DNA of 64,000 nucleotides, taken from sequence record NC_041878.1; one strand, written 5' to 3'. Position 1 is the stretch's first letter, and the number at the start of each line of letters is the position of its first letter. This document shows, piece after piece, positions 1 through 64,000 of the stretch. Made by a program: the position numbers and the translations under genes. The notes below the pieces were generated by a model that worked only from the letters and a program-made list of their open reading frames with translations, did no database searches and was not told where the DNA came from.

Positions 1-293
1 TATCCGTTCCTGAAGTCGAATGCGAATAGCACAAAAAGTACAGCAACCTTTTTTCAAAAATGATAACATGAGGTTGGGAAAAATCTGGAGTGATCGTGAA
101 ATCAAATACGAATCAAGGAAATTTTGGAGTACCCTTCAGACTTTTTCTGAGATCTCGAAAGTACACCAAAGTAAAGACGCATCGTAGAAATTACGTTCAA
201 TACTATAATACAAATACAAAGTACTGAAAATTTATACAGTACTGTTATTATGCACAGTGCAATATAAATTTTAAAATCAGATGAAAAAAGTAC

Positions 294-322
294 TTGACGA
301 GGGATGATGGAATTGATACTAT
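294..322 (+). promoter_or_regulatory. sigma70-type promoter, no ORF downstream
   Basis: TTGACG(294-299)-17 bp-TACTAT(317-322), preceded by AAAAAGTAC. Confidence 0.75.
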
Positions 323-328
323 AGCTAC

Positions 329-440
329 AAGTTAAGGAGACAGGCAACGGTCAAGCCTCTCAGCCACGTAGCCTGGAACCTTAACAGTACTGCAATGATG
401 GTTGCCCCCTGATTTGCAGTCCTCTTACCAGAGGTGTTCT
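329..440 (+). ncRNA. candidate structured small RNA A
   Basis: Follows promoter. Stems GTTAAGG/CCTTAAC (331/379), CAGGC/GCCTG, ACTGCAA/TTGCAGT (389/414), CCTCT/AGAGG; no ORF. Confidence 0.5.
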
Positions 441-660
441 CTTCATTGCTTAGGAAACATTAAGTACTAAGCGTGTTAAAAATTTGAAGTACTTTATAGT
501 ACTATGCAGTGTACATTCTACTAAGTCATCCTGCCAATAACTTTTGAATGTATAGTGCTAGTACTATATCTTTTTAAGTGAGAATATTAGTACTGTATAA
601 GTACTGATGAATTACCAAAGTACAGATACAATGAGGGTATATGTTGTCTGAATTTTGGGT

Positions 661-810
661 GTACTATCCCTATCTGCTATCTTCAGATGGATAGACTTCT
701 GGCGGTGTAGATGGCTGGATGTTTAAACGTCTAGACTGCTATCCTTCTGGATGGCTAAAAGGCTAGATGGCTATCCGTATAGATGGATAGACGTTTAGAC
801 GGCTAAATGA
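661..810. repeat. degenerate GATGG(A/C)T / CTATC repeat array
   Basis: AGATGGATAGAC at 685 and 781; GATGGCT at 710, 750, 766; several CTATC copies. Confidence 0.6.
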
Positions 811-899
811 TTTTTTCTGTCAAAATTCCATTAGCTCCCCTTCCGCGACTGGATAGAACCAGGCAGAATCGAAAGTCGTCTTTTCGTGTTGACAGGGAT

Positions 900-927
900 A
901 TAATACCACACTGAAAAACAATTGCAA
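900..927 (-). promoter_or_regulatory. leftward sigma70-type promoter
   Basis: Minus strand TTGCAA-16 bp-TATTAT with TG extension. Confidence 0.5.
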
Positions 928-989
928 GGGATTTTTTGCAGAAAAATAAATTTGACAAGTGAACCAGGATTATAGTACTATATAAGCAA

Positions 990-1023
990 GCCAGAGAAAT
1001 GGCCTAGCCCACAGGGTGCGGAG
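990..1023 (+). ncRNA. two-hairpin element copy 1
   Basis: GCC-AGAGAAAT-GGC-CTA-GCCC-ACA-GGGT-GCGGAG after TTGACA(952)/TACTAT(976). Confidence 0.7.
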
Positions 1024-1060
1024 ATCCGTCTATTGCTTTTTATTTGAATTTTGGACACAA

Positions 1061-1094
1061 TTCCGCACCCTGTGGGTCAAGGAGTTTCGCCTCC
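1061..1094 (-). ncRNA. two-hairpin element copy 2 (convergent with copy 1)
   Basis: GGAG-GCGAAA-CTCC-TTG-ACCC-ACA-GGGT-GCGGAA after minus-strand TTGCAT-17-CATAAT (1132-1104). Confidence 0.7.
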
Positions 1095-1160
1095 ATGTAA
1101 AGTATTATGCCAGTACTGCGAACATAATGCAAGGACTTTTTACGATTTTCTTTAAAAAAG

Positions 1161-1302
1161 TTTCCCCTTCTATATACGTATAAAGGAAGCGTTTAGAGCG
1201 TGTCAGATCCTGGGGCTTACAGTTTTGTACTTTATACTTTATAAAGCCGTGTAAAGCGTCCTATGCGTTCCTTGTACGTGTATACGTATATAGAGAAGGA
1301 AA
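1161..1302. repeat. large imperfect palindrome
   Basis: Perfect 13 bp IR CTATATACGTATA (1170-1182)/TATACGTATATAG (1281-1293) with imperfect flanks. Confidence 0.65.
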
Positions 1303-1476
1303 AGCCTGTTAGAAAGAATCTTATAAAAACTTATATAAAGTACTTGCAAAGGTTTTTTGGTGTGATAGTATTAATCCCGTCGAACAGGACAACGCTCTTT
1401 AAAAACTTGCTGGTGAATACTTAAACATGCCTCCAGGTACTTTGAAAAAAGAATCTGAGAGAATGAAAAAGTACTT

Positions 1477-1505
1477 GACAGCAAGAATAGAAAGTGTAGA
1501 ATGTT
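1477..1505 (+). promoter_or_regulatory. sigma70-type promoter
   Basis: AAAAAGTAC-TTGACA-17 bp-TAGAAT. Confidence 0.75.
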
Positions 1506-1511
1506 CAATAT

Positions 1512-1648
1512 CGAAAGGCGGTAAGGTTCGCCGGATGGTAGGAAGCGGTAGCAGGGCGATAAAGTACTGCTACAGTGATAAGCCGGAAGTGCTATCACAG
1601 CGTTATAAAGGTTAACATAACTGTTAACGTCCTATCTACTGCCTTTTG
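1512..1648 (+). ncRNA. candidate multibranched small RNA B
   Basis: Closing stem AAAGGCGGTA/CTACTGCCTTT; hairpins GTAGCAG/CTGCTAC, GTGATA/TATCAC, GTTAAC/GTTAAC; follows promoter. Confidence 0.55.
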
Positions 1649-1799
1649 ATTCTTTCAGTACGGTAAAAGGTACGAAAGAATAAAGATTCAGAAAGTTATC
1701 AAAAAGTACTTGACGGACTGAATCGCACGATGTAAGATGTTAAGTAAGCCGAGTGGCTAACCCAAAATTCAAAATTTAACTTTTAAGAAGGTATATATC

Positions 1800-2477
1800 A
1801 TGACTACTACTAACAACGCTAAAGCTACCAAAGTTACCCTGAACTCTATCGTTTTCGCTCCGGCTCCGGTACTGCGTGAACTGAAAGAAGGTGAAAACTA
1901 CACCAAAACCGAACTGAAAGCCCACGAAAAAGAAATGGGCGAATATCTCCGCACCACGTCGCACGATTTGGCGATGTACCTGGTAAACAAAACCGACAAT
2001 ACTGATACCATTGTCAAACTGTTTGCCGCTACCGCCGAAGCGATCCCTACAGTACTGGCCGAAGTACTGAAACAGCGTGAAGAAGAAGAAGCCGCTAAAC
2101 AGGCTGAACGCGAAAAAGCGGAAGAAGAAAAACGTCGCCTCGCTGAACAGGAAGAAAAAGAACTGCAAGCGAAGAAAGATGAAATGCTTAAACACATGAC
2201 CGATGTTCTGGGGCTGGATCTGGATGTTGCGAAAGCTGCGGTTGAAACGGTGGCGAAAAAGCTGAACGTTGGCAACCATACTAAAAACTCTTATGAGCGT
2301 GTAACCTGCACCATTGAAGGCAATCAGTACGATGTTCCGGTGCGTGGTAATATGTCTCAGGCACTGAAAGATCTGGCGGCGAAATATGGTTTCGCTGATG
2401 ACCGCGATGGATTCATCGAAAAATTCCGCGATGAACCTGCAACTGCTGATGCTGACAAAGATACCGCCGAAGCGTAA
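1800..2477 (+). CDS. coiled-coil protein with H-NS-like C-terminal half (putative nucleoid-associated protein)
   Basis: Promoter TTGACG..TAAGAT, SD AAGAAGG, host-like highly expressed codons (CTG/GAA/AAA/CGT); by-eye similarity to H-NS. Confidence 0.55.
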   Translation: MTTTNNAKATKVTLNSIVFAPAPVLRELKEGENYTKTELKAHEKEMGEYLRTTSHDLAMYLVNKTDNTDTIVKLFAATAEAIPTVLAEVLKQREEEEAAKQAEREKAEEEKRRLAEQEEKELQAKKDEMLKHMTDVLGLDLDVAKAAVETVAKKLNVGNHTKNSYERVTCTIEGNQYDVPVRGNMSQALKDLAAKYGFADDRDGFIEKFRDEPATADADKDTAEA

Positions 2478-2497
2478 TATCAAAAGTAATGCGGCAA

Positions 2498-2515
2498 GGG
2501 GGCTAGAAAGCCCCC
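2498..2515 (+). terminator. GC hairpin after first gene
   Basis: GGGGGCT-AGAA-AGCCCCC; weak U-tract. Confidence 0.5.
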
Positions 2516-2896: not shown

Positions 2897-2907
2897 GCCT
2901 ACAATCA

Positions 2908-3741: not shown

Positions 3742-3799
3742 AAATCTTTACAAAAAAGAGGTTGACTTCGGTTGGCCTCTTATAGTACTATATTAATAA

Positions 3800-3833
3800 G
3801 CCAGAACAAAGGCGTGACCCACAGGGTGCGGAG
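3800..3833 (+). ncRNA. two-hairpin element copy 3
   Basis: GCC-AGAACAAA-GGC-GTG-ACCC-ACA-GGGT-GCGGAG after TTGACT promoter embedded in a terminator hairpin. Confidence 0.7.
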
Positions 3834-3870
3834 ATCCGTTCAGTGAAAAGATAATGAATTTTAGATATAA

Positions 3871-3904
3871 CTCCGCACCCTGTGGGTTAAGGAATTTCGC
3901 TTCC
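3871..3904 (-). ncRNA. two-hairpin element copy 4 (convergent with copy 3)
   Basis: GGAA-GCGAAA-TTCC-TTA-ACCC-ACA-GGGT-GCGGAG after minus TTGACA-17-TATATT. Confidence 0.7.
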
Positions 3905-4164
3905 ATGAATAATAATATACCACTGCTGGAAAGTACTGTCAAGGAAAAAAACAGGGGAACTTTCATGTTCCCCCTAAATGCGACAAAGGCATATATCGGA
4001 CTTTGTGCGAGCTTCGTTGATCGCATGAGTACTATATCACAACGGCCAGGCGAGTGCAACTATTTGATCTGTGATAAAAATATACTTTCAAACGTGAAAA
4101 GTACTTGCAAAGAATGATTAAAGGAGTATACTTAACTTATCGAAACGAACAAGAGGATTTAAAA

Positions 4165-4947: not shown

Positions 4948-5023
4948 TTAAATTGTATATAGTACTTGCAAAATTCTGCGAGTACTATATAATTACTTAT
5001 ATCTTAAACGGGAGAACAAAGAA

Positions 5024-5479: not shown

Positions 5480-5559
5480 AATTATTATCAAAAGTACTTG
5501 CAAAATGAATGCGAGTACTTTATAATAAAGTTACATTATTAATCAAGAGGAAGTAACAA

Positions 5560-5685: not shown

Positions 5686-5757
5686 TTAAAAATAGTACTT
5701 GCATTAATTTGTGAGTACTATATAATTACTTATATCGAAACAGCGGAGTAACTTGCA

Positions 5758-5985: not shown

Positions 5986-6058
5986 TTATCAAAAGTACTT
6001 TGACAATTTTGTTAGAGTACTTTATAATTAACTTACATTAAGCGAGAGGATTTTAAAA

Positions 6059-6532: not shown

Positions 6533-6566
6533 GGCAGATAAAGCCGCAAGCCCATAGGGTGCGGAG
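6533..6566 (+). ncRNA. two-hairpin element copy 5
   Basis: GGC-AGATAAA-GCC-GCAA-GCCC-ATA-GGGT-GCGGAG after TTGACT..TATACT. Confidence 0.7.
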
Positions 6567-6662: not shown

Positions 6663-6998
6663 ATGGAACAGACTACCCTGGTAAATGAAGATGCAATCAT
6701 TGATTGTCTCCTGAATGTAATCCTTAACGCTGGCTATTGTGTAAGCGTGAATGATGGGGAATGTACTGTTATTAATCGCAGTACTGACAAAGAAGAGATT
6801 ATGTCTGAGCTTCGCGGTACAGACAGCGATTGGATCAGAATTTATAAACCTGGTGAAGCCTACCATGTTGGATCTGTTGAACTGATTTACAACAATGGAT
6901 CGGACGGATTAGATCTTATCAGTAATACAGCGGCAAGTGATTTAGAAGCCCTGGATGAATTACTTATTCCAGTATATGAATTGATTGATACGCTGTAA
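6663..6998 (+). CDS. acidic hypothetical protein
   Basis: ORF; SD GAGGA; own promoter. Confidence 0.8.
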   Translation: MEQTTLVNEDAIIDCLLNVILNAGYCVSVNDGECTVINRSTDKEEIMSELRGTDSDWIRIYKPGEAYHVGSVELIYNNGSDGLDLISNTAASDLEALDELLIPVYELIDTL

Positions 6999-7067
6999 AC
7001 ATTATCAAAAGTACTTGCAATTAGAAAGCGAGTACTTTATAATGATTATATTAAATCAGGAGGATAT

Positions 7068-7235: not shown

Positions 7236-7318
7236 TGTAAACATTATCAAAAGTACTTTACTTATTTTGTAGAGTACTTTATAATGATTATAGTTAATTA
7301 AGAGAGAGGGTTTAAGAA

Positions 7319-7498: not shown

Positions 7499-7570
7499 TG
7501 TATATAAGTACTTGCAAGTTATTTGTGAGTACTATATAATGATTGTACTTTAAGTGAGAGGAAAGAAAAC

Positions 7571-8484: not shown

Positions 8485-8695
8485 ATGTATCTATTAAAAA
8501 AGTACTGTATACTTAACCAGTACCTATCAAATATAAATTCAAACGAAAAAAGTACTTGCAATGGATGATAAAAGGAGTATAATTGTTTACATGGAAGGGC
8601 AAGAGGTGAAAGGTAATGAGTCGCAGTACTGAAATAGTTCTGTTTATCTTTGTACTAGTAGCACTATCTATTAATTTTAATTGAGAGGATTCAAA

Positions 8696-8929: not shown

Positions 8930-9000
8930 TTCATTAAAAGTACTTTGACAAAATGGTTAGAGTACTTTATAATGTAGTTATTGAGTGGGGAGGAAACAAA

Positions 9001-9502: not shown

Positions 9503-9580
9503 AAAAACATTATCAAAAGTACTTGCTAATAGAATGCGAGTACTTTATAATGTACTTATATTAAGCGAGAGAATAAAGAA

Positions 9581-9784: not shown

Positions 9785-9861
9785 CTATATTATCAAAAGT
9801 ACTTGCTAATAGAATGCGAGTACTTTATAATGTAGTTATTGAATCAAACAGAGATAAAGAA

Positions 9862-10164: not shown

Positions 10165-10229
10165 TTACAAAGTACTGGTGAAATATCCAGTACTGTTTTT
10201 ATGTACAGTACTATATCCATTGAATACAT

Positions 10230-10840: not shown

Positions 10841-11716
10841 ATGGGTAAGTATATTTCGTGGGGTATCTTTGGGGTTATCGCCCTTGCAGTAATGGCAGCG
10901 GTATTTGGTGCATCATTCACAGTAAAAGAAACTGAGCGTACTGTACTGTTGCGTAATGGTAAGTTCGTGGAAGTAGCACAGCCGGGTTTTCACCTTAAAA
11001 TGCCTTTCATTACTGACACAAAAGCAATTCAGGTAACAGGCGAATCCCGCCGTTGGGAAAAGCTACAAGCATATTCACGCGATCAACAACCTGCGGATAT
11101 GGCTGTATCTGTATCTTTCAACGTACAGCCTGGACAAGTCGAACAGTTATATAAAAAGTATAACAGCATTGACGCGATGATTTCACGTGTAATTGATCGC
11201 CAGGTGCCGCAAGCACTGGAAAACGTTTTCGGCAAGTACACAGCAATTTCAGCAGTACAAGATCGTACTAAGCTGGTGGCTGATGTTAATAAAGCCGTTA
11301 AAGAAGCAATGGCTGATGAACCGGTAACAGTATCGAGCGTACAGATCGAAGGTCTATCCTTCTCTGATGCATACGATAAAGCAGTTGAAGATCGTATGAC
11401 TGCACAGGTTGCGGTTGAACAATCCCAGCAAGATCTGGAAAAAGCTAAGATCACTTCACAGATTGCACTGACTAACGCTAAAGCCGAAGCTGATGCAAAC
11501 TTTGCGAAGTTAGACGCCGAAGCGAAAGGTATCAAAGCAAAAGGTGACGCCGAAGCATCTGCGATTAAAGCGAAAGGTGAAGCCCTTAAACAAGCTGGTG
11601 ATACTTTAGTAGCATATATTTACGCTACTACGTGGAAAGGTAATTCACCTACTACCGTAGTGCCTAATACCTCCATCACTGGCTTGAGTCTGCCAGGGCA
11701 GCAAAAGCCGCAATAA
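10841..11716 (+). CDS. SPFH/band 7 (prohibitin-like) membrane protein
   Basis: N-terminal TM, ERTVLLRNGK, PGFHLKMPF, SRDQQ, C-terminal Ala/Lys coiled coil. Confidence 0.92.
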   Translation: MGKYISWGIFGVIALAVMAAVFGASFTVKETERTVLLRNGKFVEVAQPGFHLKMPFITDTKAIQVTGESRRWEKLQAYSRDQQPADMAVSVSFNVQPGQVEQLYKKYNSIDAMISRVIDRQVPQALENVFGKYTAISAVQDRTKLVADVNKAVKEAMADEPVTVSSVQIEGLSFSDAYDKAVEDRMTAQVAVEQSQQDLEKAKITSQIALTNAKAEADANFAKLDAEAKGIKAKGDAEASAIKAKGEALKQAGDTLVAYIYATTWKGNSPTTVVPNTSITGLSLPGQQKPQ

Positions 11717-12053: not shown

Positions 12054-12131
12054 ACATTATCAAAAGTACTTTGACAAAATGGTTAGAGTACTTTATAATG
12101 ATTACATCAACCACTAAGAAGGAATGTACAA

Positions 12132-12326: not shown

Positions 12327-12399
12327 ACATTATCAAAAGTACTTTACTTAATTGATAGAGTACTTTATAATGATTACATCAAATAATGAGGAAATTGAA

Positions 12400-13109: not shown

Positions 13110-13180
13110 TTATTATCAAAAGTACTTTGACAAATAAGTTAGAGTACTTTATAATGATTATATTCAACGAGGGGAATATA

Positions 13181-13872: not shown

Positions 13873-13944
13873 ATGCCAATTACTCCAGTTGTTTTGTTAA
13901 TTGTGGTGTGTATAATAATTTTTATATTGTTGAGGCCGCGATGA
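13873..13944 (+). CDS. 23-aa single-TM peptide (not in track)
   Basis: SD AAGGA; MPITPVVLLIVVCIIIFILLRPR; ATGA-coupled to next gene. Confidence 0.55.
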   Translation: MPITPVVLLIVVCIIIFILLRPR

Positions 13945-14183
13945 AAAAGATGGTAATTGATAATACACAATTACGCATACACTTTAAAGCAAGTACTAAA
14001 GTACTGGACAAAGCATTAAGGGTTGTGCGAGAATATACAAAAGGTGAAGTTAGACCGAGGCGATTAGGTTGTGGATTGTTTGAAGTACTGGACGTTTCGC
14101 ATAATGAGCGAATCGTAATTCAAAACAGTAAACTTAACTTAATGACTCATGAACAATATAATAAGTTCGTTGAACGCCGTTGA
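13941..14183 (+). CDS. ParE-like/RelE-fold toxin family protein
   Basis: KA.RV...Y..GEVRPRRL...L.V....RIV.....LMTHEQYNK resembles the enterobacterial ParE-like family (PRR...MSHERYN). Confidence 0.55.
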   Translation: MKKMVIDNTQLRIHFKASTKVLDKALRVVREYTKGEVRPRRLGCGLFEVLDVSHNERIVIQNSKLNLMTHEQYNKFVERR

Positions 14184-17826: not shown

Positions 17827-17905
17827 AAATTCAAATGAAAAAGTACTGGACAATCTAAGTTTAGTACTTTATAATTTAAATACAAAACGAATTGAGGAAC
17901 TGATT

Positions 17906-22009: not shown

Positions 22010-22090
22010 AAGTACTAAGTACAATAGTACTTGACAAATACGAAAGGCCGCTGTCATAATGACGGCGGCTTACTTTATGGGATTAACTTT

Positions 22091-22291
22091 ATGTTTAATG
22101 TGATTGGATGTTTAGGCGTCAGTGTTGGACAGGCTGACAGTATTGATATGGCTACGCTGTTAGTACTGCGACAGATAGCAATAGGAGCTAAGAAGGTACG
22201 CACCATGCGTAACGCTCTCTCACGCCTTACCACAGGGCAGGAATACCACGTGGAATACGGTGGCTCAGGCTGTACCATACGCCGCTTATAA
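22091..22291 (+). CDS. small hypothetical protein
   Basis: GC-richer ORF; start uncertain. Confidence 0.5.
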   Translation: MFNVIGCLGVSVGQADSIDMATLLVLRQIAIGAKKVRTMRNALSRLTTGQEYHVEYGGSGCTIRRL

Positions 22292-22519
22292 GTGCTTACA
22301 GAAAGGATTTAAGTACTTTTATCTAAGGTCAAAAAATATTTGATTCAAAATAAAAGTACTTGACTTTTAAAATGCATAGGTAATCCCTTCATATTTCTAT
22401 ATGTAACATTGTTGCACTATGAAATAAATTTTTGCTTACTAAAGGCCAGTAACGCTTAGCGAGGCATAATTCCGGTATTACCTTATACATATAGAACATT
22501 CGGGGAAATTTGGAGAACT

Positions 22520-23107
22520 ATGGATATACAAAAATACGAAGTACTGAAAAACATATACTTGAATACTTGGGAGCATATTGTTCCCATGATGCAATTCAGG
22601 GTATCTAAAGCTATGAAGAAACTCGATGAGCGGTACTCTGCGAGTTACGGTACTTGGCAAGAGGGAGAAGGATTCAATCACTTTTTCAGACTATTCGATG
22701 CCGAGCACAATGAATATATGGATGGTGGTTTAGTATTTGAGATGAGTTACAATACTAGTACTAAGTACTTCAGTACTTTCAGTACCGATAACAATAACAG
22801 TATTCGCATTGCTCACTGGAAACCTGATCATCCACGATTCTACGCACTGTACGATCCAGACAATGCTAAACAGGGTACAAGTCATACTTTCATTCAATTT
22901 CCTTGCGATACTGATTACTTCTTTCAGCGTATGCTTGTGCAGGAAACATTGGATTACGATGATTACGAACTGTGGGATACAGAGGTACAGGTAATGCGTG
23001 AAGTACTGAAAGATAGTCCTGCGGTAAGTGTTGGTATGATGTGTAAAGACCTTGAATTACATCCTGACGTAATAGTGTACTTCGCAAAAGAGTTTTTTAA
23101 GGAATAA
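22520..23107 (+). CDS. paralog-array protein 1
   Basis: SD GGAG; FPCDTDYFFQRM motif. Confidence 0.8.
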   Translation: MDIQKYEVLKNIYLNTWEHIVPMMQFRVSKAMKKLDERYSASYGTWQEGEGFNHFFRLFDAEHNEYMDGGLVFEMSYNTSTKYFSTFSTDNNNSIRIAHWKPDHPRFYALYDPDNAKQGTSHTFIQFPCDTDYFFQRMLVQETLDYDDYELWDTEVQVMREVLKDSPAVSVGMMCKDLELHPDVIVYFAKEFFKE

Positions 23108-23109
23108 GA

Positions 23110-23721
23110 ATGAAACTAATGTTATTTCTTAAACTGGTAGATAAGCTAGTACTGATAAGTAATGAATTACAGGATGCAAGAGATACTTCTTATGGTTCAT
23201 ACGTACCACAAGAGTTGAGTACAGGGTTGAAGTTCACTCTATCTAGTAATAGTACACGTACACAATTGGAAGTACTGGTAGATACAGGATACCATATGCT
23301 AGTGAATTTATATTACTGGCAGGAGATTCACAGTACTTTACGTAATGATGAGTATCTTAAAATTTGTACGTACTTACCAGCGTTCTACAATAATAATGTT
23401 CATCGTGAAATGGACAGAGTGTTGTTTAAGGCTCCTAATACTTTTCCTGTACTTCCTTACGATCAGTGCTTTGATGAAGATGTACTTGAGCCTTTAATGT
23501 TTCAGCTTCTTACAAAGTACACGGAGAATGAAGTACAGTCTATGGTAGCAGTTCGTTACTTATGTCCACTCTTAACAGATGTTGAACGATTTGCTATAGA
23601 GTACTTTCCGGTTATAGGCTTAGATTTTAGGGCTTTATCTTTCTTGAGTGAACAAGATATATTAGAACTGATTGATTACATTGATGAGATAAAAAATGTT
23701 ACAAGTACTACAAACATATGA
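23110..23721 (+). CDS. paralog-array protein 2
   Basis: LEPLMFQLLTKY motif. Confidence 0.8.
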   Translation: MKLMLFLKLVDKLVLISNELQDARDTSYGSYVPQELSTGLKFTLSSNSTRTQLEVLVDTGYHMLVNLYYWQEIHSTLRNDEYLKICTYLPAFYNNNVHREMDRVLFKAPNTFPVLPYDQCFDEDVLEPLMFQLLTKYTENEVQSMVAVRYLCPLLTDVERFAIEYFPVIGLDFRALSFLSEQDILELIDYIDEIKNVTSTTNI

Positions 23722-24328
23722 ATGGTTCAAGGAAGTACTGAAGCGTACAAATACTTTTGAGGATATTCTTTTACAGGAAATTCTTCTGTACGAGTATAAT
23801 GGTGTACGATTAGAATTAATACGATTAGAATTAAACCGTATGAGCAACGCAAGAACCATATTAACGGCAACTGCAATAGGTAACGATGTTGATTATGAAA
23901 TATTCAAGTACGTAATATATAAGGATATAAGTACTGTTCATCCTAACATTTATTGGTTTAATGAAAATGATTGTAATCTTTCTTATTCCGTATTACACAA
24001 TGATACTATTAGGTTTAAACAATATAAACGGGATGGTTCTGAAGATACTAGCAGTATTGCAGTACTGGACTATCCTTTACAGGAAGAACAAGTATTTCAG
24101 CAATTAACTCGTTTTGATATTCCAGAAGAAGAGTATATAAATCGTTTTGTACGGGCTTCAGAAGAAATCATGTCTGGATTACCTGAGTTGTGTAATATTA
24201 CTTTCAGGGCTGGATACATTTGTAATCAAATAAATGAAACGAATCATAAAATTATGGTACAATCAGTTATGGATTGCATGAGGCATCTGGAGCTTGAAGA
24301 ACAGATGCGGATTGAAAAAACGCGATAA
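23696..24328 (+). CDS. paralog-array protein 3
   Basis: YPLQEEQVFQQLTRFDIP motif. Confidence 0.8.
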   Translation: MLQVLQTYEWFKEVLKRTNTFEDILLQEILLYEYNGVRLELIRLELNRMSNARTILTATAIGNDVDYEIFKYVIYKDISTVHPNIYWFNENDCNLSYSVLHNDTIRFKQYKRDGSEDTSSIAVLDYPLQEEQVFQQLTRFDIPEEEYINRFVRASEEIMSGLPELCNITFRAGYICNQINETNHKIMVQSVMDCMRHLELEEQMRIEKTR

Positions 24329-26572: not shown

Positions 26573-27016
26573 ATGCTCAATATACTAGAAAATATCGACC
26601 CAATAAATTATATTATTCAGGATGTTCTAAGTAACATCAATGGTCTTGAACTAGCACCACGAAATAATTTTTACATCGGTGATGGTTATTCACTGGATGT
26701 ACAGGAAGTACGTAAGAACATGTACAAATTAAAAGTACGAACACAGAACTTGCAGGATCTTTGTAACATTGCAATTGACAAGAAGAATCTTATTATTCGT
26801 TACAGTCCTGAATTTTTCTTTATACAAAATGGTCCATTCTTGAACACTAACTTGTTCGATGAACGTTTTGCATTAGAAGAATTACCTGATGTGTTTGAAC
26901 AGAACAATACTATATTCGGATTACCCGTTCAGTTCGAGTACAGTACTATGCAAGAAACTATACAAATGTGCCGTAGAGTTCATGATGAATTCTTGCGGAA
27001 AATTGCTTCGTTGTAA
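26573..27016 (+). CDS. hypothetical protein
   Basis: ORF. Confidence 0.75.
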   Translation: MLNILENIDPINYIIQDVLSNINGLELAPRNNFYIGDGYSLDVQEVRKNMYKLKVRTQNLQDLCNIAIDKKNLIIRYSPEFFFIQNGPFLNTNLFDERFALEELPDVFEQNNTIFGLPVQFEYSTMQETIQMCRRVHDEFLRKIASL

Positions 27017-27095
27017 TAAAAATGATACTCAAGGATGAGTATAAATACTTTTAGAGCACTGATGAGTGCATAAAAGGGTTCAAGGGAGTGAACGC

Positions 27096-27572
27096 ATGAA
27101 TATTATTCAAAAAGAGAATGGGCCGATTGATGATGTGATCACTCAAGACGGTTTTGAGGTACATGGGCTAATGTTTTCCATGAAAGATATTGTACAATGT
27201 CTTTTTCTATGTAGCTCAACTATGTACGAATTTTTTAATAATCCGATGTGTAATTGTTTTGCAGTAACAATTAACAGTACTGATAAGTGGATTATGGCAA
27301 CACCGATGACAATGAATACAGAATTTAATGAATGTGTCATGCGGAACAATAAAGGAAAGACCCCACAATCTGAAGTGGAAAAGTTACGTAATACTTATAC
27401 TAAGCCTGATGAGAAACATGTTTTAATGTTCATCTCTAAGGGTTACGTAATGGATAATTTCACGGTACGTGAAAGTTATCACGATTTTCTCTTTACAGAG
27501 GGTGAGCCTCATGTTATGATAACTGCTGAAGACATTGAGAGCTTAACACAGAAGAACCCATACTTGGAGTAA
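27096..27572 (+). CDS. hypothetical protein
   Basis: SD AGGGAG before ATG 27096. Confidence 0.75.
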   Translation: MNIIQKENGPIDDVITQDGFEVHGLMFSMKDIVQCLFLCSSTMYEFFNNPMCNCFAVTINSTDKWIMATPMTMNTEFNECVMRNNKGKTPQSEVEKLRNTYTKPDEKHVLMFISKGYVMDNFTVRESYHDFLFTEGEPHVMITAEDIESLTQKNPYLE

Positions 27573-27575
27573 TAA

Positions 27576-27746
27576 ATGGCTAAGTCGAAGAAGACTGAAA
27601 AAGTTGTTGTAAACAATCCAGTTGCAAAACACATGGAAACGTTCAATAAACCAAAAACTTTTACGGATCGTAAGAAAGATAATAAAAACGGTAAGATTAA
27701 ACACAAAGGACGCTATGATGCGTCCTTTGACGTTTCAAAGGAATGA
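27576..27746 (+). CDS. small very basic peptide (56 aa, not in track)
   Basis: SD GGAG; NPVAKHMETFNKPKTFTDRKK...KHK, a motif recalled from many myoviruses. Confidence 0.75.
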   Translation: MAKSKKTEKVVVNNPVAKHMETFNKPKTFTDRKKDNKNGKIKHKGRYDASFDVSKE

Positions 27747-27750: not shown

Positions 27751-28359
27751 ATGGTGTCTGGTGTTGGCATATATGATGGCCCGTCTGGTATCAACAGAAA
27801 TAAATTAATTTATAATATTTGGGCGGCGATGATCAAACGATGTTATTCTGAAGATTATCTATCAAGAAACCCTTCTTATATAGGAACAGAAGTATGTGAT
27901 GAATGGAAATATTATTCTAACTTTGAAGAATGGTTTAAACAAAATTATAATGATGGTTATCAATTAGACAAAGATATAATTGCGGGTGATATGAAATTAT
28001 ATTCACCTGCAACATGTGCGTTCGTACCATCTTTTATTAATACAGCAATTTTAACTAATAGAATATCATCAGAATATCCTTTAGGTGTTTCATACAAGAA
28101 ACATAAAAAATTTGTATTCGCAAAACCATATGTTTCACAAATTAAAAAATTTGGTAAAGTAAAAAGTTTAGGTATGTATTCTACACCTGAAGAAGCACAC
28201 AGAGCTTGGCAGTTAGAAAAAATAAAATATTTTCAAGAATTAATAGAACGCTTTTCATATCTTGATGATAAAATATTAAATGGAATTCAACGTAGAATTT
28301 TTCTGTTAGAAGATGATATTAAAAATAATAGAATAACTAAAATATTAAACAAGGTTTAA
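27751..28359 (+). CDS. free-standing HNH-type homing endonuclease
   Basis: YNIWAAMIKRCY..VCDEW..F..W...YQLDKDII..YSPATCAFVP..IN; C-terminal AP2-like LG.Y.TPEEAHRAW. Confidence 0.8.
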   Translation: MVSGVGIYDGPSGINRNKLIYNIWAAMIKRCYSEDYLSRNPSYIGTEVCDEWKYYSNFEEWFKQNYNDGYQLDKDIIAGDMKLYSPATCAFVPSFINTAILTNRISSEYPLGVSYKKHKKFVFAKPYVSQIKKFGKVKSLGMYSTPEEAHRAWQLEKIKYFQELIERFSYLDDKILNGIQRRIFLLEDDIKNNRITKILNKV

Positions 28360-32989: not shown

Positions 32990-33514
32990 ATGAAGATCGT
33001 GTACAAATGTAAGCAAACAGGTGAAGTTAGAAGTACTGTAAATTTGAATGAATTTAGTGGTTATAAGATACAGATTGAGCATAATAAAATAAGCAAGATA
33101 ACGGAATTGTTAAACAACGAAGTACTTGCTTTAATTAATTATCGCCCGACTAAAACCACACTCATACATAAAATTGAATACAATGGACACGTAGAATACA
33201 GGTACAATAATAATAAAGTTGACTCAATGTACTTTGAATTTAATAACAAACGATACGGTGAATATAAGAAATTTAATCCATCTGGTGAACTAGTAGACAG
33301 GAAGTACTACTATGAGAATCGAGATATTACCGAAGAAGTTATGCGATTCATTGGGTACAAAGATGATCCGAATGATTTCAAATATTACACATTTCAGGAA
33401 GATGAAGTGTTTAATTTGATGATGAAATACGGATTATATTTTAGGTTTTGTTTTGAATCTGAAAGGGAAAGTTCAGAGTTTGACTTGATTACTGAGTACT
33501 GTCAAATTAACTAA
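32990..33514 (+). CDS. hypothetical protein with MORN-variant-like segment and array-like C-terminus
   Basis: YGEYKKFNPSGELVDRKYYYEN; FQEDEVFNLMMKY. Confidence 0.75.
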   Translation: MKIVYKCKQTGEVRSTVNLNEFSGYKIQIEHNKISKITELLNNEVLALINYRPTKTTLIHKIEYNGHVEYRYNNNKVDSMYFEFNNKRYGEYKKFNPSGELVDRKYYYENRDITEEVMRFIGYKDDPNDFKYYTFQEDEVFNLMMKYGLYFRFCFESERESSEFDLITEYCQIN

Positions 33515-33526
33515 AAAGGAATTATC

Positions 33527-34069
33527 ATGGAAGATAAAAACATGTCAGTGCATTACAGTTCAGCATCGAATACTTGGGATACTCCCGATGACTTCTATCA
33601 GAAACTACATGCAGCATGGAATTTCACATTAGATCCAGCAGCAATGGATGATACTGCTAAATGTGAAAAGTACTACACTCCTGAAACTGATGGCCTAGCA
33701 CATTCATGGGCTGGGGAAACTGTTTGGTGTAATCCACCGTATGGTCGTGAAATCAGTAAATGGTTTAAGAAATTCGATGAAGAATTTAAAGAGAATGGTA
33801 CTACTATCATTGCTCTACCACCAGCACGTACTGATACGCAGTACTTTCACAAGTACGTTCGTAATTCTGCTACTGCTATTTGTTTTGTTAAAGGACGTTT
33901 GAAATTTGATAACCGTAGTCTTCCATCATGGACAGAAGATGGTTCTCATAAGAAAACTGGTGCTCCATTCCCAAGCATGGTTGTTGTGTATGATAACAAC
34001 ATTACTGCTGAAAAGTATGAAGTACTGAATAGTCTTGGTTTCGTCGTTCAACCTTTTATACTTGGATAA
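33527..34069 (+). CDS. phage N6-adenine DNA methyltransferase (T1/HP1 Dam-like family)
   Basis: WDTP..F, FTLDPAA, DGLAHSW, WCNPPY, LPPARTDT, GRLKF, APFPS. Confidence 0.92.
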   Translation: MEDKNMSVHYSSASNTWDTPDDFYQKLHAAWNFTLDPAAMDDTAKCEKYYTPETDGLAHSWAGETVWCNPPYGREISKWFKKFDEEFKENGTTIIALPPARTDTQYFHKYVRNSATAICFVKGRLKFDNRSLPSWTEDGSHKKTGAPFPSMVVVYDNNITAEKYEVLNSLGFVVQPFILG

Positions 34070-34072
34070 AAA

Positions 34073-34630
34073 ATGAAAAAGACTTGTATCATGGTGTACG
34101 GACGTTTTAATCCAGTACATTTAGGCCATGCGGGAATCTTTGGTTATGGATTAACTATGAAGAATTCTATTCCGAATTCTGATTTGAAAATCTTTGTAAG
34201 TACTACAACTGATAAAGAAGATAACCCATTGCCTTACTCATTGAAGATAGAAATGATAAAAGATTATTTTCCAGCGTTTAGTGATTATATTCAAATTGAA
34301 CAGGGAAGTACTTTGTTCGGTACATTAGAAATGTTAGATCCCAAATATGATGATTTAATCTTACTTTGTGGATCAGACCGAGTTGTTCATTTCGATTCAG
34401 TACTGAAAAAATACAATGGTACACTTTATAATTTCGATAAAATTGAAGTTATGAATATGGGTTATCGTGCTACAAGTCCTTATAGTAGTACTGTTATGCG
34501 GGATGCAGTACGAGCAAATGATTTTGATACATTTTGCTCTTGTCTTCCCCCTGGGGAACATGATATGAATAAGAAATATTTCGATTATATTGCAGCATGT
34601 ATGGGAATTTATCATGATATTCAAAACTAA
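34073..34630 (+). CDS. cytidyltransferase-like (HxGH) nucleotidyltransferase
   Basis: YGRFNPVHLGH, DNPL, CGSDR, SSTVMR. Confidence 0.85.
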   Translation: MKKTCIMVYGRFNPVHLGHAGIFGYGLTMKNSIPNSDLKIFVSTTTDKEDNPLPYSLKIEMIKDYFPAFSDYIQIEQGSTLFGTLEMLDPKYDDLILLCGSDRVVHFDSVLKKYNGTLYNFDKIEVMNMGYRATSPYSSTVMRDAVRANDFDTFCSCLPPGEHDMNKKYFDYIAACMGIYHDIQN

Positions 34631-34895
34631 TCATATGTTTTGGGATGAGAATGAAAGTACTGGATACCGTCATGTTTCGGTTGAATATAATGACCGTGTT
34701 CTGATGGCTGTAACGTCCTACAAGGTGATGGGAGTATGGGGTGCACAGGTCATCCCTATGGGCTTTTCGTTCAAGCAGGATGAGGTACAGGCGTTCTCAG
34801 ACATGTTTTCAGTACTGCCTAAGCTTATGGAATTCATGTGTAGTGAGAGCTTAACTGTTGAAGAAATGCAAGAATTTCTCTTGACAATCCAGTAA
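34614..34895 (+). CDS. hypothetical protein
   Basis: ORF. Confidence 0.7.
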   Translation: MIFKTNHMFWDENESTGYRHVSVEYNDRVLMAVTSYKVMGVWGAQVIPMGFSFKQDEVQAFSDMFSVLPKLMEFMCSESLTVEEMQEFLLTIQ

Positions 34896-34941
34896 GCGAA
34901 GCGGTACTATGAGATTTTCAACTCTATAAGGGAAAATATTA

Positions 34942-35490
34942 ATGGCGAGTTATATGACAAAAACATTCGCAAAGTACTTGCGTTTAGGGATTACACCTCG
35001 TCCTGTCCGTGGTAATTGGAAGGATGGGGATTACATGTACAGCATTTATCATGATGATGTACAGTACACTATTGATGACATGGGTGATTATGAAATTGAT
35101 TCTGATGTTTCATACATTCTTGAATGTCTTCAGGCACGTGATCTAATTATCGAACGTAACCACGATGTAGTTCGTTGTGTTTATGAACATCTTGTCAAGT
35201 ACTTTGATACAGATATTTGGGTACGTGTAAACAGTGGTATTCAGTTAACCTGTTCATTTGGTGATCGTGATGGTGTGTTTGCACATCTTTCAATGGACTT
35301 TGTTAATGCGGCAGATTATGAAGCGGCTGTTAACAAGTTTAAGAAAATGATCAAAAATGTTCCTGGATTTGAAGATGCAGAAGTACCTGATGGTTTTGTC
35401 ATGATGGTCATTAGTCCTAATAAGTCACAAGCATTTGATGAGTTTGAGCATCCCAAAATCAAAGTACTAAACATTGGTGATAGCAAATAA
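34942..35490 (+). CDS. hypothetical protein
   Basis: Promoter TTGACA..TACTAT; SD AAGGG. Confidence 0.8.
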   Translation: MASYMTKTFAKYLRLGITPRPVRGNWKDGDYMYSIYHDDVQYTIDDMGDYEIDSDVSYILECLQARDLIIERNHDVVRCVYEHLVKYFDTDIWVRVNSGIQLTCSFGDRDGVFAHLSMDFVNAADYEAAVNKFKKMIKNVPGFEDAEVPDGFVMMVISPNKSQAFDEFEHPKIKVLNIGDSK

Positions 35491-56079: not shown

Positions 56080-56122
56080 TGTTTAGGAGTACTTCGGTAC
56101 TCCATTTTAAGTAAGAGGAAAT

Positions 56123-61119: not shown

Positions 61120-61128
61120 GGATTTGTT

Positions 61129-62034
61129 GTGAATATGTATCAAGAAATTCCATTCGGTACACGGTCTGAACGTTATGATTGTGTATTCGTATGGATTTAT
61201 GCAAAGAACTGTACTCCGTACTCAAATTATCCGTACAATGATATTCCTAATGTAAGTTTAGTACTGTCAGAATTACGTTTTGATGGGTTACTAGGTGCAG
61301 TAGGTGGGATGGTAGAACATGATGATCCAAATCTTGAAGTTGCTGTTTACCGTGAAGCCAAAGAAGAAATCGATTATGATTTACCAATCGACCGTCTGGA
61401 ACCACTGGTAAGTTATAAGAATACAGTTGTTGGTTCACACAACCATGCATTTTCACTTGAAGTATCTTACGAAGAACTGTTAGAGATTCGTAATAACGCA
61501 CATAATGGTGCACATTTCAGTGCTGAGAATGCTGGTGTTAACCTTTTACATACTTGTCGTTATTTGAAAGGTAACAAAGTAGAGTGTGGATGGAACACAC
61601 TATTAGAACAACGCTTTGTCGGCACTGCAAAAATGGAACTGATGAAACTTGTTCATGCTAAAAATCTGTTGATTGATTATGTTGACGATGGAAAAACTGA
61701 AGCATCATACAAAATGTTCTTAGATGATTTGCGTGATGTTAATCAGTACTATCCAAATGAAGAATTCATTGTTTGCCGTACTTATCAAGAAGCAGTTGAT
61801 TATGTCAAAGAACATGGGATTCCTTCATTCGTATCATTCGACCACGATTTAGGCGATACTGAAAACGAAAATGAAGAAACTGGATATACATTTGCTAAGT
61901 TCTTAGTGGACTATATGATGGATAATCAAATTGCTAAGCCATTTGAATATCACGTTCATAGTGCAAATCCGGTGGGTGCAATGAACATCATTGCTTATTT
62001 GGACAACGCATTTAAATTTATTCGGAGTTTGTAA
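61129..62034 (+). CDS. NUDT16-like Nudix hydrolase fused to cyclic-phosphate-processing receiver domain
   Basis: RFDGLLGAVGG..REAKEE; C-terminal FLDDLR..SFDHDLG..TGY..HSANPVG. Confidence 0.75.
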   Translation: MNMYQEIPFGTRSERYDCVFVWIYAKNCTPYSNYPYNDIPNVSLVLSELRFDGLLGAVGGMVEHDDPNLEVAVYREAKEEIDYDLPIDRLEPLVSYKNTVVGSHNHAFSLEVSYEELLEIRNNAHNGAHFSAENAGVNLLHTCRYLKGNKVECGWNTLLEQRFVGTAKMELMKLVHAKNLLIDYVDDGKTEASYKMFLDDLRDVNQYYPNEEFIVCRTYQEAVDYVKEHGIPSFVSFDHDLGDTENENEETGYTFAKFLVDYMMDNQIAKPFEYHVHSANPVGAMNIIAYLDNAFKFIRSL

Positions 62035-62336
62035 TGAAAGGTTTTGTTGTTTCGGTTATTCTTGCTGCTGCTTTTACTTGGGGAATTACTGCAATTATTG
62101 GTTCAGTAAAGAGTACTGAGCATCAGAACGTTTATTATAATGTCGGACGAGTTGTATCGTTAGGTCAATGCAAAGATGGTACTTGTTCATATGGATATAC
62201 AGATATGAACAATGAATTAAAATATGCAACTCTTAGTAGGCCAGTTAGCTTAGGCCAATTGGTCTATCAAGAGTGCTGGTACGAAGAAGCACAAGGGAAC
62301 CAGTGCTACGTAGATTATACTCCCAGCAAAAACTAG
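62034..62336 (+). CDS. exported or membrane-anchored protein
   Basis: N-terminal hydrophobic helix; Cys pairs. Confidence 0.7.
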   Translation: MKGFVVSVILAAAFTWGITAIIGSVKSTEHQNVYYNVGRVVSLGQCKDGTCSYGYTDMNNELKYATLSRPVSLGQLVYQECWYEEAQGNQCYVDYTPSKN

Positions 62337-62400
62337 CAGTATTGCGGAGCATTAAATACTGTTAGGAAAACAAACGTGTTATACACACAAACAAAAAAGG

Positions 62401-63846
62401 ATGTTTATGAAAAAATATGTTCTTGACACAAACGTGATTCTTGGTGATCCTAATGCAGTCCTAGCATTTGAAGGAGCACATGTAATTCTTCCGTTTAAAG
62501 TACTTGAAGAATTAGATTCCATAAAGAGTCGCAAAGTTGACATTAGTAGAGATGCACGTGTTGCTATTCGCAATATTAGTACAATTCTAGAGAATGCAAC
62601 TCACGAAGAAATTTCTACTACTGGTGTTGAAATTTCAAAAACCCATCCACACATCAAAGGTGATACTCGTCTTTTTGTTCTAACTATTGAAGAACTAACA
62701 GCAATTCATCATTTGGCAAATCCAGATCTTGGTGCACCAATTGTTGATGCTAAACTAGAAACTTTAATGAAAAGTACTGTACCGGATGATGAAATCATTC
62801 TAGTTGCAAAACTATCTCAGTCAGTACTCGTAACTCGTGATATTAATATGCGTATTAAAGCACTAGCATATGGTGTTGAAGTACAAGATTACCGTCATGA
62901 TATTACTATTGAAGATTCAGATTTGATTCATACTGGTCATCATCCAATTGAGGGTGATTTTTGGGAACACGCTGGAGACACTGTATATTCCAACCAGGAA
63001 GGTCAAAAACTAATTCAAATGATTCCTGAAGAAGTAATTAAACCATTCTTACCAGAAAATCTATGCATCGGTGATTATATCTATGATGAAGCAGATGGTC
63101 TGTTTGTGTTTGAAGGTTATATTTCACTTCTTGATGCTGATGATGACCGTGATTATTTGGGCTTCAGTGACGTAGGTCAGTCTAAAGCACTATCACGTAA
63201 AGTATGGGATATTAAAGCCAAGAACATTCAACAAGCGATGGCAATTAATAGTATCATGGACAAAGACGTACACATTACAGTACTTCTAGGTTCAGCAGGT
63301 ACAGGTAAAACTCTAATTACCGTTGCTACAGCACTTGAGCTAGTACTAGAGAAAAGAAAATATGATCGTATTATCTTCTCTAAAACTCAAGACTCACAAT
63401 TCGAAGAAATTGGTTTCTTACCAGGTTCTGAAATGGAAAAAGTAATGCCATTCTGTGGTGCTGCAATTGATGCCCTAGAATATCTACACAAAGATGATGC
63501 TAACCCACAAGGTTCAATTGAAGAAATTATGAAACGTAACATCTTCCAATTTAAAGCATTGAACTTTGTTCGTGGTCGTAGTTTCATTAACACAATTCTA
63601 ATTGTTGATGAATTCCAAAACATTACTCCTGCACAGGCGAAGACAATTCTAACTCGTGCTGGTGAGAACTGTAAAGTTATTATTATGGGTAACTTATCTC
63701 AGATCGATAACAAGTTCATCAGTCCAACCAACTCAGGTTTGACTTATGTTACTGAGAAGTTTAAAGATTGGGAAGGTTGCCGCATTATTGAACTAGAAGG
63801 TGTTGTTCGTTCACCACTAGCTGCATTCGCAGAAGAAAATCTATAA
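62401..63846 (+). CDS. phoH: PIN-PhoH family protein
   Basis: PIN: VLDTNV, DDEII, TRDINMRIKA; PhoH: GSAGTGKT, RGRS, DEFQN, GNLSQID, VRSPLA. Confidence 0.93.
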   Translation: MFMKKYVLDTNVILGDPNAVLAFEGAHVILPFKVLEELDSIKSRKVDISRDARVAIRNISTILENATHEEISTTGVEISKTHPHIKGDTRLFVLTIEELTAIHHLANPDLGAPIVDAKLETLMKSTVPDDEIILVAKLSQSVLVTRDINMRIKALAYGVEVQDYRHDITIEDSDLIHTGHHPIEGDFWEHAGDTVYSNQEGQKLIQMIPEEVIKPFLPENLCIGDYIYDEADGLFVFEGYISLLDADDDRDYLGFSDVGQSKALSRKVWDIKAKNIQQAMAINSIMDKDVHITVLLGSAGTGKTLITVATALELVLEKRKYDRIIFSKTQDSQFEEIGFLPGSEMEKVMPFCGAAIDALEYLHKDDANPQGSIEEIMKRNIFQFKALNFVRGRSFINTILIVDEFQNITPAQAKTILTRAGENCKVIIMGNLSQIDNKFISPTNSGLTYVTEKFKDWEGCRIIELEGVVRSPLAAFAEENL

Positions 63847-63854
63847 CAAACTTT

Positions 63855-63881
63855 TGGGGATACTTAGGTATCCCCTTTTTA
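63855..63881 (+). terminator. intrinsic terminator
   Basis: GGGGATAC-TTAG-GTATCCCC-TTTTT. Confidence 0.85.
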
Positions 63882-63893
63882 ATTGGATAATGT

Positions 63894-64000
63894 ATGAAAA
63901 TTTCATTCCATATTGAAGCTGACCCACAAGTAGGTGATGGTGAAGCAATCTTTTATAAACTGATTAAAGTACGCCAGTACTGGATTTTTAAATTCAAGAC
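63894..64000 (+). CDS. partial CDS running off window
   Basis: ATG after GGA; open to window end. Confidence 0.6.
   Translation, partial: MKISFHIEADPQVGDGEAIFYKLIKVRQYWIFKFK

Follow-up and report, generated by a model that had tools for sequence, protein, structure and literature searches.

The stretch of DNA analyzed here, referred to as the window, comprises bases 1 to 64000 of the genome of Pectobacterium phage vB_PcaM_CBB (KU574722/NC_041878; 378,379 bp; 100% identity). CBB, of the genus Mimasvirus, is a jumbo myovirus related to T4 and belongs to the RaK2/121Q/GAP32 group. Bases 1 to 22456 are annotated as a terminal redundant repeat that is densely filled with small early genes, and the part of the window beyond 22456 carries nucleotide-metabolism and other middle genes; nearly all genes lie on the plus strand. 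Our subject is a 6-bp palindrome, AGTACT, which forms an array of 309 sites across positions 1 to 64000 and is the hexamer with the highest count in the window. A preliminary description of the same DNA had proposed that this word is strongly over-represented, that it is a positively selected, genome-wide mark, and that it serves as a protein-binding site, a methylation mark, or a packaging or ejection signal.

We compared the observed count with null models consisting of 100 dinucleotide-preserving shuffles, Markov models (M0, M1, M2, and maximal order), and 200 synonymous-codon shuffles per annotated gene (123 genes), the last of which keep protein sequences and per-gene codon usage. The dinucleotide shuffles yielded 18.48 ± 4.39 copies (maximum, 30; 0 of 100 reached 309), an over-representation of 16.7-fold, and the Markov expectations were 21.3 (M0), 18.5 (M1), and 46.2 (M2). 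The maximal-order expectation was 252, which is high only because the 5-mers AGTAC and GTACT (405 copies each) inherit the AGTACT signal; T was the next base after AGTAC in 76% of cases. The sites fell wholly within genes (225), wholly between genes (83), or, once, across a gene boundary, with a higher density in intergenic DNA (9.2/kb) than in coding DNA (4.1/kb). Under synonymous-codon shuffling, 55.9 ± 6.5 genic sites were expected (maximum of 72 in 200 shuffles) compared with 226 observed, and the excess was present in each reading frame (85 versus 25, 49 versus 10, and 92 versus 21, or 3.4- to 5-fold each). These results bear out the earlier proposal that the word occurs in all three frames and that selection acts on the DNA rather than on the protein, and they show that the excess persists when dinucleotide and codon usage are corrected for. 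The enrichment exceeds what the preliminary description had estimated, although its local hand counts were accurate (11 sites in 22.5 to 23.75 kb, 14 rather than about 13 in 33.0 to 35.0 kb, and 6 in 463 to 605), as were its values of ~35% GC and ~0.3 to 0.4 expected copies per kb (measured, 36.1% GC and about 0.3/kb).

The excess is specific to the full word. Other NGTACN hexamers, with which it might have been shared, were present in 0 to 51 copies (AGTACA, 51; TGTACT, 44; TGTACA, 36; GGTACT, 35; GGTACC and CGTACG, 0 each), and GTAC outside the AGTACT context reached just 1.6 times its expectation; an effect of the GTAC core was rejected on these counts. Moreover, the excess extends beyond the window. 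Counted over the first 300 kb of CBB in six 50-kb blocks, the sites numbered 266, 147, 112, 118, 106, and 161, for a sum of 910 (counts for 100 to 300 kb, and for several relatives, are from a plain word search). The earlier proposal of a positive, genome-wide excess is supported.

Wherever the genetic code allows AGTACT to be written, it is written in most cases. Ser-Thr dipeptides were spelled AGT-ACT in 85 of 117 instances (73%), against 17% predicted by codon usage, and the word was realized at 92 of 127 X-Val-Leu opportunities (72%) and at 49 of 82 [KQE]-Tyr-[FLSYCW] opportunities (60%). When five of the six bases were present, the synonymous sixth base completed the word in 86 to 100% of cases (odds ratios of 6 to about 160), and lysine preceding TAC-T was encoded by AAG in 26 of 26 cases versus 25% elsewhere. 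Saturation was 59 to 79% in the early genes of CBB and 60 to 72% in its 22- to 64-kb region; it was 43 to 55% in the capsid/polymerase region of phage GAP32 and 3 to 18% in a Vibrio control phage. Furthermore, the encoded peptides are themselves skewed: the dipeptides ST and VL were used at 1.82 and 1.61 times expectation, and the reversed dipeptides TS and LV at 1.01 and 0.89 times. AGTACT is thus near saturation, at a cost to protein sequence, and an excess this strong in every frame, coupled with altered peptides, is the signature known from DNA uptake sequences. The annotated tRNA set of CBB (250 to 300 kb) includes Ser(GCT), Thr(TGT), Val, Leu(TAG), and others, which decode the codon families inflated by AGTACT (AGT, ACT, GTA, and CTN), and the few tRNAs of phage RaK2 also include Thr and two Ser; the CBB set may be a secondary adaptation to the AGTACT-driven codon shift.

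The targets of restriction-modification systems are normally avoided by phages, and CBB avoids palindromes strongly. No fewer than 29 of the 64 palindromic hexamers had zero copies in the window (for example, GATATC and CTTAAG, with ~17 expected each), and GCGC was absent from 100 kb of CBB (89 expected). Avoidance was also found in GAP32 (20 to 66 kb): CBB and GAP32 lacked 18 to 22 palindromic hexamers in a comparison in which Vibrio phage 2.275.O lacked none (0 of 56), and T4 likewise showed no avoidance. AGTACT is the single extreme exception to this pattern in CBB, and with its 16.7-fold excess it does not behave as an avoided restriction site, which would be under-represented. ATGCAT, which contains TGCAT, a motif modified in Erwinia phage Kaldavass, also escapes avoidance in CBB.

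The flanks of the 309 sites are mirror symmetric. Position −1 was A in 132 cases, C in 94, G in 32, and T in 51, and the complement of position +1 was A in 129, C in 101, G in 12, and T in 67. The extended consensus, MAGTACTK, is weak: position −1 favors C or A and disfavors G, and position +1 does the complement; the extended word GAGTACTC occurred once in 100 kb of CBB. A palindrome with mirror-symmetric flanks is what would be expected for a symmetric dimer acting on duplex DNA. Spacing between sites was near Poisson (coefficient of variation of gaps, 0.82 to 0.99), no pair-distance bin or period indicative of periodic or phased spacing exceeded the nulls, and an apparent ~175-bp regularity at 33 to 35 kb was within chance.

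The density was highest in the terminal redundant repeat (1 to 22456), which holds 143 sites (6.4/kb). Its noncoding left terminus contains a cluster of 10 sites at 220 to 605, including the 6 at 463 to 605, and five further noncoding sites lie at its inner boundary (22011 to 22360), two of which abut a −35-like TTGACA. Clusters also occur inside genes, with eleven sites in gp053 to gp055 (22540 to 23739, plus strand) and fourteen in gp071 to gp075 (33032 to 34978, plus strand). The suggestion that AGTACT is a packaging or ejection signal found no specific support, since ~1,000 Poisson-spaced, nonperiodic sites are unlike such a signal, even though the terminal repeat has the highest density. 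The genes for the HNH endonuclease gp063 (27751 to 28359; GC, 0.28; 609 bp) and the Band_7 protein gp029 (10841 to 11716; GC, 0.45; 876 bp) carry no site; both deviate in GC content and appear to have been acquired too recently to have taken on the genome signature.

A subset of the sites has a stereotyped position in promoters. The arrangement AGTACT-N14-16-AGTACT-n-TATAAT occurs in 14 copies, all within short intergenic gaps that precede terminal-repeat early genes, and these 14 double-site promoters give rise to a peak at 21 to 22 bp in the site-to-site distances. The first AGTACT abuts, or overlaps by one base, the −35 hexamer (TTGACA, TTGCAA, or TTTACT), 1 base separates the end of the second from a perfect −10 TATAAT, and the first copy is preceded by an A-rich, UP-like stretch. 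The two copies are centered about two helical turns apart, at both regions of RNA polymerase contact. All 14 are on the plus strand. The first, at 4961 to 4993, reads AGTACT-TGCAA...AGTACT-A-TATAAT; at 5493 to 5526, copy 1 overlaps the first T of the −35 TTGCAA and copy 2 ends 1 nt before TATAAT; and at 5994 to 6028, the promoter has a perfect TTGACA-17-TATAAT (12/12). Three others also score 12/12 (8939 to 8973, 12065 to 12099, and 13121 to 13155), and the rest are at 5694 to 5726, 7010 to 7043, 7252 to 7285, 7507 to 7540, 9518 to 9551, 9798 to 9831, 12338 to 12371, and 17842 to 17875. An independent scan with the sigma-70 consensus placed exactly the double-site promoters in its top ranks (four at 12/12 and eight at 10/12). 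Many further intergenic sites hold just one of the two promoter positions. A role as a sigma-70 promoter element thus applies to a subset of the sites only, as 225 of the 309 are intragenic and are not promoter elements.

The double-site pattern recurs in relatives. A scan of IMG/VR returned 28 copies in CBB (both repeats), 9 in GAP32, 8 in RaK2, 7 in Serratia phage BF, 4 in Yersinia phage fHe-Yen9-04, and 2 in 121Q, in addition to several metagenomic contigs of 355 to 371 kb. The −35 element, which was absent from the query, directly followed the first AGTACT in all of these genomes.

The excess of AGTACT itself has sharp phylogenetic limits. In 21-kb stretches centered on the capsid gene, the word occurred 43 times in GAP32, 41 in 121Q, and 40 in RaK2, compared with 4 in Vibrio phage 2.275.O, 0 in PA5oct, and 2 in Atu_ph07; in 11-kb stretches, the counts were 25 for Kaldavass, 17 for Munch, 43 for XbC2, and 3 for Stenotrophomonas phage RAS14. 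Longer stretches agreed, with 161 copies versus 11.5 expected in GAP32 (20 to 66 kb), 18 versus 14.8 in 50 kb of Vibrio phage 2.275.O, and 4 versus 6.9 in 35 kb of T4, which has a similar GC content. No substitute enriched word, as predicted by a coevolving specificity, was found in the 50 kb of the Vibrio phage. The AGTACT-rich phages, whose members include CBB, GAP32, Kaldavass, Munch, 121Q, and RaK2, were monophyletic in both the major capsid protein tree (support, 99/95) and the portal tree (99/100), with the AGTACT-poor Vibrio phage as their sister and PA5oct and Atu_ph07 outside. The simplest reading is a single origin of the excess on the stem of this enterobacterial clade. XbC2, whose recorded host is Xanthomonas, retains the excess, which makes a reader carried by the phage more likely than a factor of enterobacterial hosts. 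In 50 kb sampled from E. coli K-12, there were 3 sites (~0.06 per kb), against ~3 to 6 per kb in the phages, a difference of ~50-fold.

Individual sites are conserved above their surroundings. Across a 40-kb alignment of CBB and GAP32 (81% identity), AGTACT was intact in both genomes at 97 of 164 aligned sites (59%), compared with 35% for hexamers in the same frame and 36% for hexamers 6 to 12 bp to either side (Fisher P = 3.6 × 10−8). The other ~40% of sites differ between the two phages while the totals are similar, so selection seems to target overall density no less than individual positions. Of the 18 words that differ from AGTACT by one mismatch, none was depleted (ratios, 0.62 to 3.2).

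Among the functions named in the preliminary description, a protein-binding site fits these observations best, given the palindromic word, the symmetric flanks, and the stereotyped positions in early promoters. Our leading, though tentative, interpretation, held at a little less than even confidence, is that AGTACT is the core of a densely repeated site (approximately MAGTACTK) at which a symmetric protein binds double-stranded DNA in a sequence-specific manner; the protein, probably encoded by the phage, would label phage DNA and switch early promoters. The reader would be symmetric and probably dimeric and would have arisen in, or been acquired by, the ancestor of the enterobacterial RaK2/121Q/GAP32/CBB phages, after which selection would favor as many sites as the proteins tolerate. 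Dense AGTACT would then act as a "self" label on an otherwise unmodified genome, letting the reader separate phage from host DNA. The same protein would be a switch on the family of strong early sigma-70 promoters: with both promoter sites occupied, RNA polymerase would be occluded and the early genes shut off.

Several points weigh against this interpretation. We infer the protein reader, its phage origin, and the effect of its binding, and the occlusion of promoters is read from geometry. A Pfam search of 50 window proteins found no DNA-binding domain, with hits only to Dam, DUF7230, and a ParE-like domain; the other ~500 genes lie outside that screen. A "self label" at one site per ~300 bp requires an extra mechanism, such as spreading, bridging, or counting. 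The double-site promoters account for 28 of the 309 window sites (<10%), and the second early region (CBB 250 to 300 kb) yielded no instance of the pattern. The contrast between phage and host densities is based on the one 50-kb E. coli sample, and the data that argue against a modified word come from one R9.4.1 Tombo study of a relative of CBB, with motifs identified by manual inspection (PMC11780129). Finally, saturation statistics of this kind could also arise from a mutational or conversion drive.

A bolder extension of the binding-site interpretation, which we regard as possible but rather doubtful, is that a sequence word replaces a modified base as the mark of "self." A clade-specific protein would gauge AGTACT density and thereby ensure that host shutoff, protection from nucleases, allocation of RNA polymerase, or the early-to-middle switch is directed to phage DNA alone.

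Covalent modification of AGTACT (a methyl or other group carried by C, A, or T), which would mark phage DNA and whose density the excess would raise, is an unlikely alternative to a binding-site array, and a methyl mark in particular is disfavored. AGTACT is the target of the ScaI restriction-modification system, whose methylase makes N4-methylcytosine, and an unprotected phage with ~1,000 ScaI-type sites would seem exposed. Enzymes of family PF05869 are typically GATC specific. CBB has three DNA methyltransferases, listed in a paper that mentions neither AGTACT nor ScaI (PMC5259590). The phyletic profiles of two of its methyltransferases differ: the Dam-family gp072 (33527 to 34069) is clade-wide, with homologues at 39 to 45% identity in 121Q-like and RaK2-like genomes, making a clade-wide writer conceivable, but for the N4/N6 methyltransferase gp157, close orthologues were confined to ~18 records of Mimasvirus/Eneladusvirus, the 121Q and RaK2 groups having none. 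Kaldavass belongs to the same genus as CBB, Mimasvirus (capsid identity, 98.7%); it carries the AGTACT excess and encodes three methyltransferases. A Nanopore comparison of its native DNA with whole-genome-amplified DNA reported GATC, CCWGG, and TGCAT as the modified motifs, one motif per methyltransferase, and AGTACT, with ~1,000 sites, was not among them (PMC11780129). Moreover, a mark would explain why sites are tolerated but not a 17-fold excess with distortion of the proteome, unless there were a reader too.

It is similarly improbable that the excess reflects molecular drive, in which a phage repair, recombination, or nuclease activity converts near-cognates in heteroduplexes or favors word-bearing DNA in replication or repair, on the model of very-short-patch (VSP) repair or uptake-sequence drive. 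T4-type phages recombine intensively, and both the saturation and the turnover of sites are as a persistent bias would yield; the lack of sites in the recent-looking gp063 and gp029 also fits slow accumulation with residence time. However, VSP-like directional conversion was rejected because no one-mismatch neighbor (0 of 18) was depleted, unlike the CTWGG depletion that accompanies VSP repair. We know of no enzymology for a drive acting on all six positions and every mismatch type. Such a drive would also have to account for the sites in promoters, whose positions are fixed, have functional meaning, and are conserved between genera, and would need a strong bias, as amino acid replacements have been accepted to create sites.

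The possibility that the sites are a sponge or decoy for a DNA-binding protein of Enterobacterales hosts (SlmA, LexA, or a defense sensor), which phage DNA would titrate or activate, we consider somewhat remote. With one exception, the phages showing the excess have Enterobacterales as their recorded hosts, the poor relatives being recorded on Vibrio, Pseudomonas, Agrobacterium, and Stenotrophomonas, and since early promoters must fire before any phage protein exists, the reader could be a host protein. Vibrio has SlmA and LexA as well, yet the Vibrio phage lacks the excess and the Xanthomonas-recorded XbC2 retains it. The E. coli site of the nucleoid-occlusion factor SlmA, GTGAGTACTCAC, is a 12-bp palindrome with an AGTACT core, G/C beside that core, and conserved outer GT..AC (PMC3020112), but the phage flanks run counter to it, with G at −1 and C at +1 the least used and GAGTACTC so rare; identity with the SlmA site was rejected because only 21 of 413 sites in 100 kb had three or fewer flank mismatches to GTGAGTACTCAC, against ~54 expected. 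As for LexA, whose gammaproteobacterial SOS box is CTG-N10-CAG (ideally TACTGT-N8-ACAGTA), pairs of AGTACT 18 bp apart form boxes of LexA geometry, TACTG-N10-CAGTA, but both half-sites are needed and only 5 boxes occurred among the same 413 sites, and LexA half-sites were rejected as a general explanation.

Distinctly unlikely, in our view, is a role as the cleavage or nicking site of a phage enzyme, with transient breaks starting recombination-dependent replication or loading the clamp for late transcription. These T4-type phages have recombination nucleases, endonuclease VII, ligase, and a clamp loader, a logic of "more sites is better" is conceivable, and motif-linked nicks are known in other phages (PMC11780129). 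Nevertheless, nicking both strands at a palindrome amounts to a double-strand break, the Nanopore study that reported nicks for another phage reported none for Kaldavass (PMC11780129), no ScaI-like nuclease is annotated or was seen among the 50 scanned proteins, and the fixed promoter positions would be left unexplained.

An action in RNA, with AGUACU as a processing or binding signal, is very improbable: the palindrome is present in the transcript from either strand and most sites are in transcribed DNA, but the flanks are mirror symmetric rather than transcription oriented, the density peaks in intergenic DNA, including upstream of −35 elements, and palindromes make up 1.6% of hexamers, so a palindromic RNA signal would be unlikely by chance. 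A scan of the window against Rfam matched no family. The idea that base composition, codon or amino acid usage, repeated DNA, or palindrome purging generates the excess as a by-product has a negligible chance of being right, for although the maximal-order Markov value is near the observed count and the terminal repeat has homologous promoter copies, none of the dinucleotide shuffles, trinucleotide models, and synonymous shuffles accounts for the excess, which extends to nonrepeated coding sequence across 300 kb and to genomes that were sequenced independently and is lacking in T4 and the Vibrio relative at similar GC, and each purged palindrome frees at most about 20 sites.

Other features of the window were noted. 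Boxes of LexA/SOS geometry lie at 222 to 241, 6764 to 6783, 8503 to 8522, 10173 to 10192, and 10191 to 10210, with none in the following 90 kb; three are built from AGTACT pairs 18 bp apart, two overlap (10171 to 10212), and they suggest host LexA control of some early genes. Iteron-like direct repeats, GATGG(A/C)T and AGATGGATAGAC, occupy 685 to 810 in the noncoding left terminus, adjoining the AGTACT cluster, and are a possible origin or packaging-related element. A GC-rich 15-mer, TCCGCACCCTGTGGG, has 8 copies (0 expected), found in the terminal repeat only, at 1008 to 1076 and 3818 to 3886 and as single copies at 6551, 8469, 10231, and 20894. It is arranged twice as inverted pairs 39 nt apart, giving a very stable hairpin (1000 to 1085: −42.5 kcal/mol, z = −6.3) with no match in Rfam; gp007, a minus-strand open reading frame (3793 to 3966), overlaps one TCCGCACCCTGTGGG element and may be a miscall. 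A perfect hairpin with a UUCG tetraloop, GGAGTAC-TTCG-GTACTCC, which contains AGTACT, lies just past gp113 (56083 to 56100) and resembles a terminator or RNA stability element. The small early protein gp037 (13941 to 14183), annotated as hypothetical, contains a ParE-like toxin domain (Pfam PF24732, E = 2.7 × 10−11). Nucleotide conservation across genera is highest at gp060 to gp062 (26573 to 27746; ~80% to relatives hosted by Yersinia, Serratia, Erwinia, and Xanthomonas), three small ORFans (orphan open reading frames) of which gp062 matches DUF7230.

The closest likeness to known systems is with DNA uptake sequences (the uptake signal sequences [USS] of Haemophilus and the DNA uptake sequences [DUS] of Neisseria), which, like AGTACT, are short, over-represented words that occur in genes in all frames, bend peptides, and are shared by a clade. 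USS and DUS are over-represented by one to two orders of magnitude, occur about once per kb, and are read by a specific protein. However, they are 9 to 12 nt long and nonpalindromic, belong to bacterial chromosomes, and are kept by biased uptake plus recombination, whereas AGTACT is a 6-bp palindrome at ~3 to 6 per kb in a lytic phage whose life cycle has no uptake step; the likeness is one of genomic signature only. Stoperators of cluster A mycobacteriophages, the sites of the L5 gp71 repressor, are also one word scattered in and between genes and doubling as promoter operators, but they are 13 bp, asymmetric, oriented with transcription, present in ~25 to 35 copies per genome, and bound by the immunity repressor of temperate phages. 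AGTACT could not be classed with them, being palindromic, with symmetric flanks and without orientation, and no repressor was found by Pfam among the 50 window proteins.

In T4, with glucosylated hydroxymethylcytosine (Alc, EndoII, and EndoIV), and in SPO1, with hydroxymethyluracil (TF1), a property of the DNA lets phage proteins tell their own DNA from that of the host, as proposed here for AGTACT; SPO1 has an abundant phage protein that favors phage DNA and keeps early promoters repressed. In T4 and SPO1 the mark is chemical and lies on every C or T, whereas AGTACT would be a word mark in ordinary DNA. Over-represented words with dedicated reader proteins are also found in E. coli (Chi, KOPS, matS, and the SlmA site GTGAGTACTCAC), although their copy numbers range from tens to about a thousand per 4.6 Mb, Chi and KOPS show asymmetry and strand bias, and the phage flanks disfavor the SlmA consensus. 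ScaI (AGT^ACT), with the identical 6-bp recognition word, demonstrates that proteins can read exactly AGTACT; here, neither a ScaI-like nuclease nor AGTACT methylation was found for the clade.

The excess was not described in the literature searched, which covered full-text searches combining the word with phage terms, the CBB and RaK2 papers, jumbo-phage reviews, and a restriction-avoidance survey; "SCAI" in the RaK2 paper is a culture medium, not the enzyme. The same literature held no comparable viral case of an over-represented word read by a protein. Beyond the preliminary description, the present analysis adds the promoter architecture, the near-saturation, the proteome skew, and the sharp clade boundary. 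AGTACT lends itself to direct testing, being the site of a commercial restriction enzyme and easily made into an oligonucleotide bait (AAGTACTT and CAGTACTG), and the genomes are extremely sensitive to ScaI-type enzymes if the sites are unprotected. The codon and dipeptide statistics of the clade are distorted by the word, and the double-site early promoters offer a ready-made regulatory module.

Words read by proteins, such as Chi, KOPS, and the uptake sequences, have taught much about bacterial chromosomes. Strong selection for AGTACT across jumbo phages studied for therapy and agriculture (RaK2, 121Q/PBECO4, GAP32, CBB, and Kaldavass) implies that an important process has gone undescribed. 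If AGTACT does replace a modified base as the mark of "self," it would be a genome-wide identity code read by a protein, a novel means by which a virus whose DNA is chemically ordinary sets itself apart from its host, and such a code would account for the ~70% saturation and the reshaped proteome of these phages.

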